Assembly (NCBI GenBank): GCA_016748015.1
Contig: JAAOMT010000543.1
Location: 372,001-436,000 of the forward strand
From: Geosiphon pyriformis uo1
Lineage: Eukaryota > Fungi > Glomeromycota
Length of the DNA stretch: 64,000 bases
Reading direction: 5' to 3'
In this document: in pieces, positions 20,501-61,000 of the stretch
Numbering within the stretch: position 1 is the first letter of the stretch
Layout of the letters: every line of letters starts with the position of its first letter
The notes under the pieces: generated by a model
Told to the model about the DNA's origin: nothing
What the model saw: the letters and a program-made list of their open reading frames with translations, nothing else
Database searches by the model: none
Program-made: the position numbers and the translations under genes

Positions 20501-21070
20501 GCAAAGATTCTTTATATCACCCACTACTTTGGGGATTTTTTATTGGATTCGTCGCACCAATCCCTCTTTACTTCCTCCATCGCAAATATCCATCAGTCAG
20601 ATTTGATCTCGTTAATGTGCCAATCATTTGCAGTGGTTTGACAATGTTTCCAGGAACCTATACCAATTTCATCATAATGGGCTTTGGGACTTGCATATTA
20701 AGCCAGTATTGGTGTCAACGTCACCACTATTCTTTGTATAAAAAGTCAGTTTTTGAAAGTTTCTAAGCAGAGCTTGCTTTCAGTTTTATAGCGATTCTAA
20801 TTCCGTTAATTTGAACTGCGTATTAGATATAATTACATTCTTTCTGCAGCATTAGATAGTGGCACCCAATTTGCCACTTTATTTATTTTCTTTTTTTTAG
20901 ATGGTGTCATGAAGGTGAGAAAAATCTTATTAGCCTTCATTGATTCTAACTCCAAAAGTATTTGCTCACTATAATTTATTATGGTAAACATCAATATTCA
21001 GATATCTTCCCCGGAATGGTGGGGTAACAATCGTGAGACACAGGGTGAAAGATGTTTTGGGCCTGATTGA
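17568..21070 (+). CDS. OPT-family oligopeptide transporter (~16 introns)
   Basis: Motifs EENSPIPMVAA..DDP, LNPGPFNVKEH, STQMIGYGLAG, MVWPSNL, PGRPIANVYFKCYGY, DLKLGLYMKIPP, SVLWGLIGP, YNYILSAALDSGT, PEWWGN; many TM segments; stop TGA at 21068-21070. Confidence 0.95.
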
Positions 21071-22743: not shown

Positions 22744-22750
22744 TATAAAA
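22744..22750 (+). promoter_or_regulatory. Candidate TATA box of the micropeptide gene
   Basis: TATAAAA about 75 bp upstream of a GTAAGT donor at 22821. Confidence 0.45.
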
Positions 22751-22971
22751 GGAACACAAATTTACATAAAAACTTTCACAATTTGAAAGCAACCAGCATT
22801 GAAGAAACTTTTTATATACTGTAAGTAAAACATGTTTTGAGTTAAAAATTTCTAAAACTGCCTAAAATATATTAAGCGAATTAGAACAGCAAAGATTTCC
22901 TAATCATCTTAACGAACGTCGTAACCTAACTTAACTAAATTAAGGGAAGCAACCAGAAGCTAACCGTTGAC

Positions 22972-23114
22972 ATGAAATTCAAAAAAGTCTTTAAGAAGTT
23001 GGGAAAGCCGTTCAAGAGGTTGAAGAAGGTATTATGATTCGTTGCGAATATAAATTTTAAATCGACTCGTCTAACTTATTATATTCGAACTAGGTATTCA
23101 AAAAGATTTGTTGA
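22972..23114 (+). CDS. 25-aa cationic amphipathic micropeptide MKFKKVFKKLGKPFKRLKKVFKKIC (exons 22972-23028, 23094-23114)
   Basis: 65-nt intron GTATTA..CTAAC(23071)..TAG, and a 5'UTR intron GTAAGT(22821)..CTAAC..AAG(22944). The heptad hydrophobic periodicity is kept across the splice junction. Confidence 0.65.
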
Positions 23115-25532
23115 ATAATATTTTAATCAAATGTTGAATAAACAAATCTGAGAAAACTTAACAGTTGGGGAAGAACATTTTATGATGAATTTGTCTGTGA
23201 TAATTTGAGGTAACTTTAGATCCCTTATTGGATTTTTTTGACAATGAAAATTATAGGTAGTTTTTATACTGTCAATAAAGTGAAATAAACGTTTTTCTCA
23301 ATAATTTTTTGTAATATCCAATTTCTGAATCAAAATCATGATAAATATTTTGACACTATTTTTTAAAGGAAAATTTCAAATTTAATTGATCTTTCTTTTT
23401 CATGTTCTAAACTATTAAATTATCATTCCTTCAAACCATTTATTTATTTCATGTTTCCTATCTCTTAACAGGTTTGTTCACAGAAAAGCCATTTAAACTA
23501 TCAAATTTGGAGGTTAAAAGTTTGTAAAGCTTTCATTACAGAGGCTTTTGATAATTTCTTGCTTATTTGTGAACGAATTATTTTAAATTAGCTTTGTTTA
23601 TTCAATCAAAAATATTAATAATAAACTTCAATTTTTTTTTTATTAAATAATTTCATTTATCATATTTTTGTTAACCAAATTTATAAAATTTTAATTTCAA
23701 ATATTTAATAATAGTCAAATATATTAAATTAAATAAAAAATTATTATATTTAATCTAAAATATAAAAATATAGAATAATTCTAATATTATGTTATATTAA
23801 TGTTTTTATAAATTTGTTTAAATTCAACTGTAAATAAATTTTTTTGGTATTGATAATTTGATTTTTATGAATTGACAGTCAGATATGTGTTTTTAAGGTA
23901 AAGTTAGGAAAAATTTTCGTTTCCATTAATAACAAAAATAAATTAATATTAGCAAATTCTGTGTCCATTTAGTTAAGAATATTTTTTAAGGTAAATAATT
24001 AATTTATTAGGCGTTGAATGTTATGAACTCTTGTTTAACTAAAGAATAGAATAATAATTCTAAATTTATCGTTTTTCGTTTCACTTCAAAGATTTTCATC
24101 CAATTTATTCTTTAAATATATAAATGGAACTTCTTTTATCCACTTGATACACTAAAAAGTTGAAATAATAACTTTAGAAAAAAAAATTATGCATTCAGCT
24201 CATGGGCCGAATTTCTTTAATATATTATGTTTTTAGAATGAGCTCTAAAAGTCTAATAATATTTATTGAATGTTTCTAAGCATTTGTCATCGTTGGAAAA
24301 TAAATTTTAACTCTCCATTTCTCTTGCTCTTGCGGTGTTGAATAAAACCTTCGTCTCTTTGCTCGTAAGAAACATGGTATAAAAGTAACAGGATTTTTAT
24401 TTTAAAGTGCTCAATAGGTTAACCAATATAACACGACTAACAAATTGTTTTTCAGCTACTAAGTGAACTTAAAATCCTCAAACTACAATACTGATCAGAC
24501 CATAATTCTCCAATTAGTAAATATTAACCATTTCTGAATAGTTTTCGTCTCATTCTCAGTTTCCCATCTAATATTATTGTTAATTAGCTAAATCAATCAT
24601 CGTGAGCGAGCTTCATGCATTTCTTGATAATAATACGAGACTTGAAAAAAGATTTCCAGATGACTATTATGCACAAACAAAATCATTGCACCTTTCTCGC
24701 ATCAAAATTTCTTCCACATTGTGATAAAATTTCATTTTCTCTTTAGACTGCCTCAGAGAATTTATAAAAAACTTTTAGAACAATCAATTATACCAAAAAG
24801 ACTTAATTCATCTTGCGTAAAAAAGCAATCCAAATTTTTGCAGAGAATAACTATCCTTAAATCCCAAAGAAATTCAAATTAATATTTCGCCTTTTAAATA
24901 GACTTCTTTTATTTCTTGGTCTCCACACGGTCTTTTGCCCATTTAAGGAACGGAAAAATTAAAAACCATGTGCTCAGGGATAACCCATTAAAATAGATAA
25001 TGGTCTTTGACGTCAGTTATCACACAACTATTGTTTAAATTATATTAATAGTAGTTGACATCTTTTGATACAAAAGTGATGAATATGACACCACAGGCAT
25101 TCTTAAATTTCATGATGTAAATGGATATCAGAAGTATGATATATGTGTCGTTCAATAGTTTCTTTTATGCATCTTCAACTAATCAGAATTATTTACACTT
25201 TGTCAAAAGTCTCCCTTACTTTAAGTAAATTTTTTTAAAACTTCATGTTCTCAAAGAAATCTCTACATACTTCCAAAGAAGGTACGTATTTATTCCTTTG
25301 AAGTAGAAATTTTGTTCTTTACCTTTTTAAAGTTGCAAACAATGAGATATAAATTGTTTTAAAAATATAAGTCAGGTCTACAATTTTTTTACTTAATCTA
25401 AACTGAATAGGTGCCCCACTAAGAAAGCAGATATAGACTGGTTAATCTGTGCGTGATCAAAAATCAATTTCCAAGAGGAACAAATCCATCTATTCAACTT
25501 TCAAATACATCACGATCCCTCAAGATTATACG

Positions 25533-28445
25533 ATGCTTCCTAATAATCAAAGCATCTCTGATCTCTCCACAAATAATCCAGTTGAGCGTCATCCAAGCAG
25601 TGTTCGAGATAACTCATTAGACATAAGCCCTTACTTAGCTCCAAATGTCAATCATGACGAAACGACGATGTTACCACCCCTGGAACCTATCAGAGGTAAT
25701 GGTGTCAAACCTGTTGAATTTTTAGCCTCAGTTTCTGATGGTAAGTCAAAGGAATCAAATTTTTGCCATTTGAGGATAAACTCAAACTCAAACTTAACCT
25801 TTCGTTTAGATTCGCAAACTTCTCTAATCCCAGCAAAGGAAATAGGTCCCAATGTCACACATCCAGTTGCGATATTGGAACACAAGATTTTTGACTCTAA
25901 TGGAGAAATACCTAAATCCGACATTCCAATTGCCGTTTCATTCCAATGTGATCAAAATCTGGCTTTGAACATCCCTAACGAAAAGACTCATTTAGATAAG
26001 CAAAGAACATTATCAGATTTTTGGAGAGCTGAGCAAATTCCCTCAAGCTCAACAGTAGAACAAAAATTGCACCGATGTACGAACTCCCTTGCCCGCGAAA
26101 ATAAGAAAAGTGAATTTGCTAAAAACATTTGAAGGTGCTGATTAAAATCCTGTTCCATGGAATTAAATGTCTCTTTATTTCAGCAAATGGAAACAATCCT
26201 TCTAAGGTGAACAATGGTAATTCCCATATAATGAATGGTGCCTCCCAAAGTATAGAAATTTTTGCTTCCAGAAAACTAAAGGTATTTCATTAATCAGTGT
26301 TCCAAAAGAGATATTGACCTAATTGACTGGATTTAAGTTCTTAGCTTCTTTCCCTTTAGCTCACCACAATCCCACGATTCTACTTCCCTAAAAGGAAAAC
26401 AAGGAGTGAAGTTATGAGCCCAGAGATACTGGTTATTATTTGAAATTACCAGCTAGCTTCCCCTTGAAATTAAAAGTTGAGAATTCGTTCTTACAATTTA
26501 AATCCTACCACAAAATTAAACTTATTCACCAACAGGAAAGGGTCCGGGAAATTTTTAGTGGGAAAGAATATCTCACACAACCACACTTTGCCCCTGTAAC
26601 GAAGGCTTGTGATTTGCCCAGGTATATAAGTGTTGCTTTTTTTACCAAAATTGACGAACTGGGTGAAGTTTGTGGGCAGGTAACATGTGACGAATTTGAA
26701 AGGTAAGAGCTTGGCTTTGATATAATATTGATTATAGAAAAATTTTAATATTATCTCTGATTTTGTGCAGAGCCTGGAATCATTTAAACGAAATATCCAT
26801 TGATGAAACCTCATTAGTCTTTAATATCCTAAAAAGTGAAGATGGTCAATACTTAATTCCAGATGATTTTTCCTTGGTCTTGGAAGGTAAATAATTTGGT
26901 TTTAGAGATTTTTTTCAGTTTTTAAAGAAGCTTGGAATATTTCTAACAGAAAACTATATTTTAAAGATATTGTTCTGAATCATCCGGGCCTTGAATTTTT
27001 AGCCAGCAATAATGTGTTTCAAGAACGATACAGTATGCTTCGTTTATATATATTAATATTTTTGTTCCCTCGAAATTGACTGATTTCATGTGATTCTTTG
27101 AAATTACTCAGTGGAAACTGTGATTAGCCGGTTGTTTTACGAATTCAACCGTAATTGGTCAAATAAGATGTCTATCAAAGAGTTCCGAAGGATGGATTTT
27201 CCATCCATGTTACGCAAGTTGGAAACGAAGATGGATATGAGCCATGTGGGTCACTTTCGATAATTTGTATTGCATTTTTGTTGTCACTTGGTTACACTGC
27301 TACATCAATTTGCCTCTTTTTTTCCAGACCCACGATTGCTTTTCATACAAACATTTCTATGTCATCTATTGTAATTTTTGGGAGCTCGACACTAACCATG
27401 ATTTGAGAATAAACGAAAAGGAATTGGCCAGCTATGGAAGCGAGGCATTATCAGGCAGAATTGTTACCAGAATTATTAATGGGTGGGGTAAAGTCAGTGA
27501 TCTACCCAGCGAAGAAGAATTAGCTGAGGATCCACAAATGAGCTATAGGGATTTCATTTGTAAGTATAATTTCAAACGTATAATTTTTTTAAACCTTTCC
27601 TTATTTTGATTCCTTAGCCATCAAACCTTTTGTTCAGGGTTTTTCATGTCAGAAATCGATAAAACTACACCCACTGCGATCGAATATTGGTTTCGGTGCT
27701 TGGACTTGGACGGTGATGGAGTACTGAGTGCATATGAATTAGACTACTTTTTTGAGGAGCAGGCTTGCCGTATGAAAATCTTGAGAATGGACCTAATAAG
27801 ATTTGAGGACTGTATTTGTCAGATGTGAGGCATTAGTGACCTTAAAATCTCTATTTTTCTGCAAATTAGGTATTTTTGAACTTATGAATCAATTCTCGCT
27901 CTTTATATATAATTAATAGGTTTGATATGATTAAACCCGCAAAAGAAGGTGTAATTACCCTTAGAGATCTGAAAAAATGCCCTCAAAACGCTGCTCCATT
28001 CTTTGATATGTTTTTTAACTTATCAAAATTTAGTCACTACGATCACCAACAACTACAATCGCGAATTCGACAGCAATTATTATTCGAAGAGAATGGGCAA
28101 GAAACCATCGGGATAGCATTCGAGAATATGAGGTAAAGTTTATTCCGGTATTTTACTACCAATTACCAAGTTTTTATGAAAATAATGTTGAGATCTTTAA
28201 ATTCAAAAAAAAAAAGTGAATTCGACAATTATGCTGAAATGGAATATCATAACCTTGTCGTGGCCGATCAACAAAATAGGAGACGCCTGGAACAACAATT
28301 ATTGGAACAGAGCCTTTTAAAAGACAACCGTGCAGCTAGTAAGTTTGAAGCAAGTAGAAAACATACATTATTTGGGACTGAGGATTATGATGAGAGCAGT
28401 GACGAAAGCGAGGAATTTGAGGATGATGCATATGAAGACATTTAA
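25533..28445 (+). CDS. PPP2R3: Protein phosphatase 2A regulatory subunit B'' (PR72/PPP2R3 family, EF-hand)
   Basis: IPRFYFP, HPGLEFL, FSYKHFYVIYCNFWELDTNHD, MSYRDF, EIDKTTPTAIEYWFRCLDLDGDGVLS, FEDCICQMFDMIKP..ITLRDLK, FFDMFFNLSKF; multi-exon. The start codon is inferred. Confidence 0.92.
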
Positions 28446-55099: not shown

Positions 55100-58000
55100 A
55101 TTACTCAGGAAAAATAACGCAAACCACATCATTTTATAAACTTTATCAATAAGATTTCTAATATAATAACCAATTTTATAATAGCAATACAAATTTATAT
55201 TCAATATATATTAATAATAAAATTAAATAAAAAAATTATTATAGATAAACTTACAACTATATTTTGTAGTACTTTTTTTATTAAGCCAACTATTTTGTTT
55301 TTTTCCCGGTATTAATGATAATTTTTGAATTTTTATTGTAAATAATTTTGGTTATAATTTTTTAGTTATGATTTCAATTTATGATTTTCGATTTTTTGTT
55401 AAAAACTAAGTAAATAATCAAAAGTTTATTTTAAGTTAAAGTTGTTTTTTTATACAAAAAAAAAATCTTATTGAAATTTTTAAATCTTTTTTATAATTTT
55501 ATTTATAACAAGATTTTGAACTTGTATTGCTTTTTTAATAACTTTATTAAAAACATTAGATCTATTACAGATTGCTAAAATTATGAATAAACTTAATAAT
55601 ATTTACACCAGTCCTATAATTATTTCCAAAAACCAATAAAGATTTCAAAAACCAACTTTTGAAAACAAATTTTTTGGCAATATTAATACATTATATAAAG
55701 TTTTAAGAACAAAAAAATCCTTCAATAAACAGTTAAATAAGCCAAAATATTTAATTAAAGTATTAATAAAAATACCAATTTTTACTGCAAAATCAAAAAT
55801 ATATAATCGAAATTTTTTAATAAACTAAAATAAAAACAATAAACACTTAAGTATTTGGAATTATAAAGTTTTTTTTAGCTAAAATAGACAATTTGTAATA
55901 TAAAGTTGTCATAAAATATAATTAAAAAATAATAAAATCTAAGCCAAATATATTGATTTTTAAATGTTAATCTAAATTTTATATTAAAACAGTTTTTATC
56001 AAATTAAAATTTTAAGCCAACAATTTTTTAATAAACTTTTAACATATTTAATCTTTTAATTAATAAAATAAATAAAGTAAACATAATTTTTACAAAATAA
56101 TAAATATTTTTAAAAATTGTCTTATTATTAAACATAAAAATTTTTTTTAATATTAAATAATAATATAAAAATAATATTGTATACTTAGGTAATGGTTGGG
56201 CTGCACTTGTAAAACTTTAATAAAAAAAAATATATTGTCAATTTATCTATAAACAATTAACTTAATTATTATTTATAATATTTAAATAATTTTTGACTTT
56301 ATTTTAATAAACAATTAAATTTTTATTTTTGATAATATTATTAATATATTATTTTTTAATTTAATATTAATTACAAAATTACAATTGATTAACAATTCTA
56401 TTTTATATATATTTAAAAAATATTAATTATTCAAATTAATAACAATAATATTAAACACTAATACATATTTTAAAAACAATATTATTGTTTATAATTTAGC
56501 TAAAATTAAAAACATTAAGCTATAAATTTTTATATTTATACCAAAATTAATATTTAAAAAATAAACAATATTATTAATAATATTATAAAAGCCCAAATAT
56601 TTAATTAAATTGTTAATATAAACAGAAACAACTTTTAAATCAGTTTTTTTTAAGCATATTTTAATTGTTACAAAATAATAAATAATTAACAAATATTAAA
56701 AATAAATAACAAATAGTAAAATTAATATACTATTTATAAAATTATTATTAATTATAAAAGTTAAAACAAAATCAAATTAAACAGAAACTAAACTTTTAGA
56801 ATCTAGTTATTTTTAATAGTAAAAGTTTTTTAATTAAAGTAAAATCATTGCTATTTAAAAACTAATTAATAAAAACAATACCAAATTTTTAATAACTTAA
56901 TTACAGTAAAATAAATAAAACAACTAAAACCATTTAAAATTAAAACTTTATTTCTAAAATGAAAAGATATTTATTATATTAGCCAAAAATTATCTTAAAA
57001 AAAATTAAAAATCTAACTAAAAATAAAAAATATTATAAGAACCAATCTAAAACTTATAAAGTTTAAGTTTTATAAAAAAAATATATATTAAAAACATTAC
57101 AAATATTTGCAAATATTATAATACTAGTTACTTTATTTTAGATTAAATTTGTTAAAAATCTTTAAGTTATAAAACAATAAATAATACAGAAATTTATTAA
57201 AAAGTTTTTGAAGAGATTAACATTAATTTTTAAATATTTATAAATTAAAAAGTTATATTTTTTACATATGTTTTTATAAATAAAACTAAATTGAATTTTA
57301 TAACTAATAATAAATTATAAAACCATTAATATTAAATAGAAAAATTGTTTATTTGAAATAGCTTTTTTTAATATTATATTAACAAAAAATTTAATATTTA
57401 TATATTTTTTAATTAAACTAAACTTATATAAGCAATTCATTAATAAAATTTTTTTTAACAATAAAGATAAATAAATTATTAATGCTTAATAAAACTTCTT
57501 TGGTTTTCTAATTAATAAAAATAGTTATAGTTTTATTATTATTTATTAAAATATTATTGATCTCAAAAAATTTACTAACAATATTTAAAATATGTTAAGT
57601 AATAGTTTTATTATTTTTAATTTAAATTATGTTATTAATAAATATATTAACAATTAAATAAAAAATTATTTTACCTTTTATTTTAACTTTCTTAATTTTA
57701 ATAATAAATTTGAAATCAATTTTGTAATTATATAAATGTTTATGTTTTTTAATTTTACAAAAAAAAAGTCATAAAAAATATACAAAAAGTAAAAAAATTT
57801 TATTTGTTATAAACTGAAAAAATATAATTAAATATAATTTTATTAAAATTTTTTTGGCCATTTTAATTAAAAAAATAAAATAAATATTAATTAAAATATT
57901 TTTTTATTTATAAAGTTTAAGAATTATTAACATCTAAATTTTTTTTATAAAAAGCAAATACAAATTTACTTAATAAATAAAAAATTTATTTATCACTATT

Positions 58001-61000
58001 TTTTTGGTTTTAATTATTTATAATTTTATTTATCTTAAATTTAATATTATTAAGCTCTAAAATCAAATTATTATTATTAATTAAATAATCTAAAACAACT
58101 TTATAAAAAGAATACTTTAGTATAATTTAATTATACAATTTTTATTATTGTCAAAGTTTTCTGTATTTTTTAATAACAGTATTTATTTTGGATGTTTTAA
58201 CTATTTAAAATTTATAGTATTTAAAATTTCCTATATATCTTCTTAATTTTAGACAAAATAAAATCAATATTATAATAACTTAAATCAATTAATAATATGT
58301 TCTGTATTTTAAAAGTTTTAATATTATTAATAAATAAACAAATACCCAAAAGTTGTTTAAATTTAAAACCAAGACTTAATTTTAATTTCATAGTAATTTT
58401 AAATACTAATTGTTTATTTTTGGTACAATTAAATATTTTATACCAAATTTTAAAAAAATTTTATTAACTAATAAACATAAAATGTTTTTTTAAAATAATT
58501 TATATAGTATTTAAATTCTTAAATTCTTTTAATTTATTAAATATATTAGTCATAACTATAGTTTTTAATAAAAATAAATTCTTAAAGTAATTTTATTTAT
58601 TATTATTAATATTTTTAAAGTTGTATTTTTAATAATTTTTATTGGTTTGCTTGAACAAAACATTAAATTAAGTATTCAAAAAATTATCTAAATTAACAAA
58701 TATCAAAATAATTTTGTAATTAAATTAAAATACTTAGATATTTTATATATATATTGTTTAACAGGAGCAATAAAAAAACCTGTTAACAAAAATATAATTA
58801 ATTATCTTTTTTATCTCTTTAAAATTATTTTAAGTCAAAATTTTAATCTTAAAAAAACCAATAAAGAAATTACATAAACCTAATTTTAAATACTTTCTAA
58901 AACTAATATTATATTTGATATTATTTTTGTTAAAATTACTTTCTAAAACCACAAATATACTGGTGTTTATCACTTTGACAATAAAAAAATTAATATCAAA
59001 AGTTTAATCTAATTTTATGTTAAGAGATGTCTTAATATATAAACCAAGTATTATAACTAAAATTTTTTTTTAAACAATAAATAAACGAAAAAATAAATCT
59101 GAAATTTTTAAAACTTAAACATATGTTTAATTAAATTATTGTTTATAATTATTGCAATTTCAGAATCCAAAAAATTCGAATATAAACACATAAACTCTAT
59201 TAAATTTATTTATTATTTATAATTTAACATTATTTTTTAGCTTTGTTTTTGTAATAATTGAAACTATATTATTTATATTTTTATGTTATTTAATAATATA
59301 TTTTTATTTTGTAAGATTATTTATTTCTTTTATATTACATATAATAATTTTTCAAATTAAACTAGTTATTAAAAAAAGATATAAATAATTTGCTTTTAAA
59401 AACATTTTATCAAATTTTATGTATTATTATATTAATAAAACCTAACAGTTTAAATAGTTTAGCTCTAAAACTACCCAATTAAGTAATAACAAAATTAAAA
59501 ATACCAGAGTTTACAGATAATATATTGTTTAAAATTTTATTAGTATTAGATACTAGTATTAAAAATAATAAAGAAAAATAAAATATTTAACTTTATAATA
59601 TTAACATAATCTGGTTAAAAAAAAACTTTAAACTTTATTTTAGTTTATTTAACCACAAAACTGTTAATAAAAAAATAATATTAAATAAAATTCAAAAGAA
59701 ATAGAACCAATTTATTAACCAAAAAAGACTACTTAAATTTAAAATTTGCTATCAAAACAACTAAATACAAGATAAATTTTTTTTAACAAATACAGCTCAA
59801 TTATTATCTAGTATATATAAACAAACTAAGTATTTACAACTAAATATAACTTACACATTTTCTATATGTGACCAGTTATTTAAGCCAGTCAAGACTTTAC
59901 AACTTATTTAATTAAAAAAAACATATCAATATATAAAAAATAAATAAAATTCAAAAATTAAACAAATTTTTATGATTATTTTTTATTATAAAAGTTTTAA
60001 CAAGATTTAAAACTAAAAAATAATTATATAAATATTAATGTATTTATTATTTACTTTTTTTTATTTTTTTGCATTTAAAAATAATTTGTGCATAAAATTA
60101 TACATTATATCTTTGTATTCTATTAGTTTTATTATGCTAATTTAATAAAAATTTCAATATAAATGTTTTTAATTATTAATAATACATTAATTTATTTTTA
60201 AATAATTATTTTTCTTATATTATTAAAGTGTATTTAAAAAATAAAATTTGAATTTTTAAATTACCACAATATTTAGTTATTACAAATTATTATTATTATT
60301 ATTATTATTATAATAATATTAAATTTTGTTATTATTTTTGTAATATTTAGTTTTTTAATTTAAATTAAGCATATTATTTAATTTTTTTGAAAAAATTTAT
60401 TTTTATTTAGCACATAATAAATTTGTTTATATATTGTATTATTTTAAATATTAAACAAATATATTTTACAAATATTAATTGCTTTAAATTAAATTCATAT
60501 TCACTTAACAGATGTTCAAGTTTTAAATTTGTATTAAAAACATAATTCAGGAAATTTGCATTTTTTAAATGTAATAAATAATTTTTTTTATAATTTACTC
60601 TTAATTTGAATATAAGTAACCAAAATTTTTTTCAGTGAGTTATCAGAATTAATTAAAGAAAATCCACAATTTTGGTGGTGTATTAATTTTGTAGCTTAAA
60701 ATTTTGCCTTTTATTATAACAAATTTTTTATATTTTTTTGCTAACTTGGTATTTTTTATAATAATTTTACTTTAATTTGGTTTTGGTTTAAACTAGCTAA
60801 AAAATTACAATAAACAAAATCTTAACTTATTTTTATCAGTAAAAAAATAATCGATTGAATTAAATAAATCATAACCTTAGCATAATTTTCAGAAAAAATT
60901 AACGTTAGTCATTACGTTTTTATTAATAATTATTTTGGCTTTTCATTATGGTATTTTTTTATATTAATGCAAACATAATACAAAACTGTTGTTTAGTAAA

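Follow-up and report, generated by a model that had tools for sequence, protein, structure and literature searches.

Very short basic proteins and peptides are known from ribosomes, from host defence and from symbioses. The classical eukaryotic micro-protein is eL41/eS32, a basic helix of 25 residues that is buried in rRNA. Cecropin-, BMAP-27- and melittin-type peptides fold on anionic membranes and disturb them. Hosts that house intracellular bacteria also produce cationic peptides, including the legume NCR peptides, coleoptericin A of weevils and the BCR peptides of aphids. These peptides bear signal peptides and belong to gene families; most are rich in Cys, and the host sends them into symbiont compartments enclosed by a membrane. 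The fungus Geosiphon pyriformis hosts Nostoc together with a Mollicutes-related endobacterial population (PMC13315312).

The locus described here lies in the Geosiphon genome and would encode a basic peptide of 25 amino acids. Whereas eL41 is universally conserved in eukaryotes, limited short-peptide searches have found no relative of this peptide. Like the symbiont-directed peptides it is cationic and comes from a host of intracellular bacteria, but unlike them it is single-copy, linear and leaderless, and its link to a symbiont is conjectural. Judged from its sequence, the candidate looks like a stand-alone spliced micro-gene and not like part of a longer open reading frame (ORF), a repeat or a copy of eL41. 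A preliminary description of the locus had interpreted it as a gene encoding an amphipathic cationic peptide, and this interpretation appears plausible.

Genomic setting

The window, that is, the whole 64-kb stretch of DNA that was analysed, corresponds to C673:372001-436000 in an assembly of 128 Mb and 792 contigs. The candidate stands alone in a 4.7-kb gap between two larger genes, and no other convincing ORF is present there. The upstream neighbour, an OPT oligopeptide transporter gene, has its end at 20766. The downstream neighbour encodes a PP2A B''/EF-hand subunit, and its 11 exons have been mapped exactly to 25533-28442; the long exon matches the 649-aa G9A89_015268, a hypothetical protein of Geosiphon pyriformis, with 99% identity. 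At the DNA level the micro-gene locus is single-copy in the 128-Mb genome.

Several other identities of the region have been considered. The preliminary description had named a longer ORF in another frame as an outcome that would speak against a micro-gene. No longer open frame crosses the region on either strand, and a longer ORF or a minus-strand gene was rejected on this ground. The codon-antisense frame is open for just 24 codons and is without usable splice sites. A 5' exon of the PP2A B'' gene or a 3' end of the OPT gene was judged unlikely, as these genes are 2.4 kb and 1.9 kb away and introns of this genome measure 65-250 nt. A host gene for a snoRNA or other ncRNA was also rejected, because the candidate region contains no Rfam family and no tRNA and its introns are without C/D-box motifs by eye.

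Two features of the surroundings were recorded in passing. The PP2A B'' model (G9A89_015268) removes a 69-nt in-frame stretch, 25741-25809, from inside a continuous open frame of 227 codons; this intron has a GTAAGT donor, and the stretch could equally stay as coding sequence. Extreme A+T blocks occupy 44000-50000 and 56000-60000 of the window, with a G+C content of 10-20% compared with ~30% elsewhere in the window, and the GC skew is strongly negative at 56-60 kb.

Gene model

The coordinates of the gene model are given in Table 1. The TATA box, the 5'UTR intron and the coding intron, each intron with its CTAAC site, agree letter for letter and in position with those given in the preliminary description. 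The start at 22744 in that description needs a correction. A TATA box is indeed located there, and for this reason the transcript is expected to start some tens of bases downstream and exon 1 to be shorter than first drawn.

Table 1. Features of the candidate micro-gene in window coordinates; a slash within a motif marks the splice junction.
Feature	Position	Strand	Remarks
TATA box TATAAAAG	22744-22751	+	77 nt upstream of the first donor; read from the sequence
Exon 1, non-coding leader without ATG	22775-22820	+	start inferred ~30 nt past the TATA box
Intron 1, 5'UTR, 124 nt	22821-22944	+	donor CT/GTAAGT at 22820/22821; CTAAC at 22926-22930; AG at 22943-22944
Exon 2	22945-23028	+	27 nt of leader; ATG at 22972; 19 codons; A at -3
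Intron 2, 65 nt, phase 0	23029-23093	+	donor AAG/GTATTA at 23028/23029; CTAAC at 23071-23075; AG at 23092-23093
Exon 3, coding part	23094-23114	+	six codons (third heptad, terminal Cys) and TGA
3'UTR	23115-23160	+	AATAAA at 23137-23142; 3' end approximate

In this reading of the sequence, removal of intron 1 also removes an ATG at 22832, and the candidate ORF of 19 + 6 codons opens at the first ATG of the spliced leader. Retention of intron 2 would close the frame after two more codons and would give a 21-aa peptide of similar character. The donor of intron 2, GTATTA, is a weak splice signal. The AATAAA of the 3'UTR is weak evidence as well, since this hexamer is common in AT-rich DNA and occurs 3.5 times per kb per strand in the 64-kb window. 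The 9-mer AGCAACCAG is found in both leader exons, at 22790-22798 in exon 1 and at 22948-22956 in the opening part of exon 2; it may act as a leader element or be coincidental.

Splice signals and joint rarity

Both candidate introns have the form GT..CTAAC..AG, and the model combines splice signals with codon periodicity in the manner of a coding gene. A strict search for GTAAGT..CTAAC..AG in the 64-kb window returned intron 1 as the only match on the plus strand and three matches on the minus strand, and TATAAAAG occurs six times per strand. The sizes and donors of the candidate introns agree with those of the annotated PP2A B'' introns (n=10), which measure 68-95 nt apart from a single 254-nt intron; GTATTT is among their donors.

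The acceptor of intron 2 opens directly with V-F-K-K, and in this way the third heptad of the peptide repeats the first. An AG/VFKK acceptor occurs once in 528 kb of strand sequence, namely at the junction of intron 2 with exon 3. The K-V-F-K-K units of heptads 1 and 3 are written differently, with four of the five codons synonymous but not the same; that a heptad unit returns beyond an intron in other synonymous codons suggests that the peptide has been under selection. The earlier argument that a periodicity continuing across the splice junction speaks against chance is valid in view of both observations.

Rough chance rates have been assigned to four features of the model: a strict intron within 100 nt upstream (~3e-3), TATAAAAG within 150 nt of the donor (~1e-2), an ATG-free leader (~0.2) and AG/VFKK within 150 nt past the donor (~2e-4). 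The rough product of these four rates, taken together with an expectation of about one such ORF per genome at most, places the joint chance far below 1e-6, and pure coincidence is for this reason regarded as unlikely.

An origin of intron 2 by tandem duplication of the exon-3 region, with AGGTATT at both ends, was rejected. The local alignment was reached by 72 of 2000 shuffles, and control segments outscored it.

Coding signal

The G+C contents at codon positions 1, 2 and 3 of the candidate are 16, 16 and 64%, and position 3 in exon 2 reaches 74%. An equally high excess of third-position G+C was found in only 6 of 1616 short ORFs, and this signal contributes a further, independent factor of ~4e-3 to the chance estimate. 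The candidate uses AAG and AAA at a ratio of 7:4 and TTC and TTT at 3:1. The corresponding ratios in the PP2A gene are 13:20 and 10:30, and eL41 has an AAG:AAA ratio of 5:3. Exon 2 as a whole has a G+C content of 40% compared with ~25% in its flanks, and ranks within the highest 3.4% of 84-nt windows taken from the intergenic DNA.

The eL41 gene of the same genome

A search with the PF05162 (eL41) profile identified one locus in the genome, C694:253224-253298, which is not the candidate. In this gene a TATA box stands 63 nt before the GTAAGT donor of a 5'UTR intron of ~200 nt, and a further intron separates the TAA stop from the last sense codon of the single 25-codon exon. Spliced 25-codon genes thus do exist and work in this organism, and the eL41 gene can usefully serve as a model for how micro-genes are built in Geosiphon. 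The possibility that the candidate is a paralog or a diverged copy of eL41 was rejected, with 4/25 identities, a local score of 22 against a shuffle mean of 23.8 and no similarity at the DNA level.

The predicted peptide

Translation of the two coding pieces yields 25 residues, including 11 Lys, 1 Arg and no Asp or Glu, with a net charge of about +12. The peptide consists of M-K-F-K followed by three imperfect heptads, KVFKKLG, KPFKRLK and KVFKKIC, so that Cys is the last residue. Nonpolar residues occupy positions 3, 6, 7, 10, 13, 14, 17, 20, 21 and 24, and a Gly-Lys-Pro element is located in the center. The composition and the heptad positions of the nonpolar residues are thus as first described. 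The absence of a signal or pro-peptide was also borne out: the N-terminus has no hydrophobic core, with at most two adjacent nonpolar residues and with Lys at positions 2, 4, 5, 8 and 9.

The peptide has an Eisenberg hydrophobic moment of 0.71 that peaks sharply at 100 degrees, and 18 of 100000 composition-preserving shuffles reach this value. Among 1616 ORFs of 18-60 aa in 264 kb, both strands included, the candidate alone has a moment of at least 0.70. The 64-kb window contains 472 ORFs that start with ATG and are 18 aa or longer, and among these the candidate alone has a K+R content of at least 40%. An i.i.d. null model built from the chance ORFs of the genome predicts ~0.3 basic amphipathic ORFs of such quality per genome, and compositional patchiness probably raises this expectation to about 1 per genome. 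With ~0.3-1 such ORFs expected in a genome-wide scan, the properties of the peptide alone do not exclude chance. The case for a micro-gene is carried by the gene architecture rather than by the peptide.

In charge and moment the peptide agrees with the linear cationic amphipathic helical antimicrobial peptides, which are a functional class and not a homology family. The term 'cecropin-like' used in the preliminary description finds no support in a family sense: there is no Pfam match, and the only look-alike in the PDB is 2igr (CB1a, a designed cecropin-B derivative), at E = 10 and by way of a common KVFKKI unit. Membership in the cecropin family (PF00272) is likewise unsupported, as the N-terminus is also without a signal-type hydrophobic core.

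Search for relatives

A Pfam scan of the 21-aa unspliced ORF found no family at E values up to 10, including eL41 (PF05162) and cecropin (PF00272). No paralog was detected in the 128-Mb genome by DNA or by the exon-2 peptide beyond the locus itself, and two back-translated degenerate patterns of exon 2 gave 0 matches in JGI metagenome contigs. A degenerate heptad pattern applied to the whole genome gave 19 matches compared with 23 for a reversed control, which is chance level. Of the relatives with available data, Ambispora gerdemannii and Ambispora leptoticha are the nearest; their PP2A B'' proteins are 56% and 51% identical. Two Ambispora PP2A B'' contigs contained no similar K-rich micro-ORF and showed no synteny with the window beyond PP2A; their short upstream sequence of 1.4-2.4 kb makes this a weak test. 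The paralogs and orthologs for which the preliminary description had proposed a search did not appear in the genome, in the JGI metagenome contigs or in the two Ambispora contigs within these limited searches.

The heptad pattern also met a near-identical 30-nt string that codes for F-K-K-F-N-K-x-F-K-(R/K) on at least eight contigs. Its sites include C136:113574, C352:113609, C592:134297, C668:353043, C705:233828, C706:610713 and 938600, and C787:1561531. The string presumably represents conserved sequence within a dispersed repeat or a transposon ORF, and it is unrelated to the candidate.

Interpretation

The promoter and splice signals suggest that the locus is probably transcribed and spliced. 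The leading reading, with about even odds, is a real, lineage-restricted and unannotated three-exon micro-gene whose peptide is made and functional. The features that are statistically unusual, namely the moment, the splice signals and the codon-position G+C, argue for more than chance. A membrane-active or antimicrobial-like function, drawn entirely from physical chemistry, is possible but doubtful.

In the mechanism proposed for such a function, the first AUG of the spliced mRNA would open the 25-codon frame and the product would be leaderless, with no signal peptide. In water the peptide would have no defined structure, whereas on an anionic surface it would form a two-faced helix whose Phe/Val/Leu/Ile side is buried and whose Lys side rests on the phosphates. 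Given this folding on anionic surfaces, the most likely mode of action would be binding to anionic membranes, with permeabilisation at a higher dose. Because a signal peptide is lacking, the accessible targets would be cytoplasmic, and those met first might be the wall-less Mollicutes-related endobacteria, organelle membranes or RNA. Alternatively, the peptide might leave the cell through a non-classical exporter. The intracellular antibacterial, endosymbiont-control or membrane-regulator roles put forward in the preliminary description are speculative and come from physical chemistry only; as Geosiphon carries Mollicutes-related endobacteria as well as Nostoc, a control of endosymbionts by the peptide is conceivable. 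The specific proposal that a leaderless cytosolic lytic peptide from an eL41-style gene polices wall-less Mollicutes-related endobacteria lying free in the cytoplasm is highly improbable. If true, the peptide would amount to an 'intracellular antibiotic' of the host for which a secretion signal is unnecessary, since its target lacks an enclosing host membrane. A point against the leading reading is that a cytosolic peptide with these properties should be dangerous to the mitochondria of the host as well.

The micro-gene may also be real and its product a housekeeping polybasic micro-protein, which binds RNA or ribosomes like eL41/eS32 or is taken up by mitochondria in a presequence-like manner. 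The 25-codon length and the layout shared with the eL41 gene of the genome, the codon use resembling that of the highly expressed eL41 (AAG over AAA) and the lack of a signal peptide all fit such a product, and mitochondrial presequences are also basic amphipathic helices without acidic residues. It is nevertheless unlikely, as the similarity to eL41 stays within that of shuffled sequences, no Pfam match exists and a canonical eL41 is encoded elsewhere in the genome. Micro-proteins of this sort are widely conserved, whereas the candidate is without a detectable relative, and its 40% of bulky hydrophobic residues on one face is typical of membrane binders and not of peptides buried in rRNA. Presequences, for their part, are rich in Arg and precede a mature protein.

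Two further explanations do without a selected peptide. The decidedly unlikely one is a locus that is transcribed and spliced into a non-coding or proto-gene transcript, in which the ORF is young or arose by accident. Against it stand the third-position G+C of 64% compared with 16% at positions 1 and 2, which is unlike raw AT-rich DNA, the heptad that recurs across the intron in different synonymous codons, and an ORF that begins at the first AUG with A at -3. It would account for an orphan with no paralog or ortholog found in the searches; A-rich DNA readily gives Lys codons, and comparable basic amphipathic ORFs are expected by chance at the rate of ~0.3-1 per genome given above. The other, that there is no gene and that whole-genome scanning singled out a chance coincidence of promoter-, splice- and ORF-like features in intergenic DNA, is improbable. 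Each motif is short, AATAAA and TATA-like strings are abundant in the genome, no homolog has been found, and the splice sites were originally picked to yield the neatest peptide. These points have to be set against the joint rarity of the features, which by rough arithmetic is far below 1e-6 and to which the codon-position G+C adds its own factor.

Should the three-exon micro-gene be expressed, it would, eL41 aside, rank with the smallest spliced fungal genes known to encode a protein, and would be a rare case of a eukaryotic amphipathic peptide of antimicrobial type encoded without a signal or pro-sequence. Its expression would also raise the question of how early-diverging symbiotic fungi control cytoplasmic bacteria, since both a cyanobacterium and wall-less endobacteria are intracellular here. 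The candidate would also show that standard annotation of glomeromycotan genomes misses micro-genes that can be recovered by sequence statistics. If it is not expressed, it would serve as a warning that a gene model arising by chance can look convincing.

Comparison with known peptide systems

Leaderless bacteriocins, phenol-soluble modulins and fungal a-factor-type pheromones resemble the candidate in that the translation product is approximately the active peptide and has no secretion signal. Export of such a leaderless peptide, if any, would need a dedicated transporter, and no gene for one is adjacent to the candidate. The bacterial examples differ from it in being prokaryotic and unspliced. 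The a-factor precursors have a CaaX end and are lipidated, whereas the candidate ends in K-K-I-C, which is not a CaaX box. A pheromone precursor of the a-factor type was rejected on this basis, as Cys is the last residue directly before TGA.

Cecropins, BMAP-27/28 and melittin-type peptides share with the candidate a length of 20-40 residues, a high positive charge and the absence of acidic residues in the active helix. They also share a hydrophobic face with i/i+3/i+4/i+7 spacing and a central Gly/Pro kink, and the K-V-F-K-K-(I/L) unit is present in cecropin B too. Unlike these host-defence peptides, the candidate has no homology to them and no signal or pro-piece, and the peptide would be the whole product of a three-exon fungal micro-gene. 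Cecropins have a hydrophobic C-terminal helix, whereas both halves of the candidate are equally cationic.

The candidate is like eL41/eS32 (PF05162) in having 25 codons, a very basic composition and a predicted single helix. At the gene level, the eL41 gene of Geosiphon and the candidate both have a TATA box, an intron in the 5'UTR, a single main coding exon and a further intron close to the stop. The candidate differs from eL41 in that its peptide is Lys/Phe-rich and amphipathic rather than Arg-rich, and in that the intron follows codon 19 and not codon 25.
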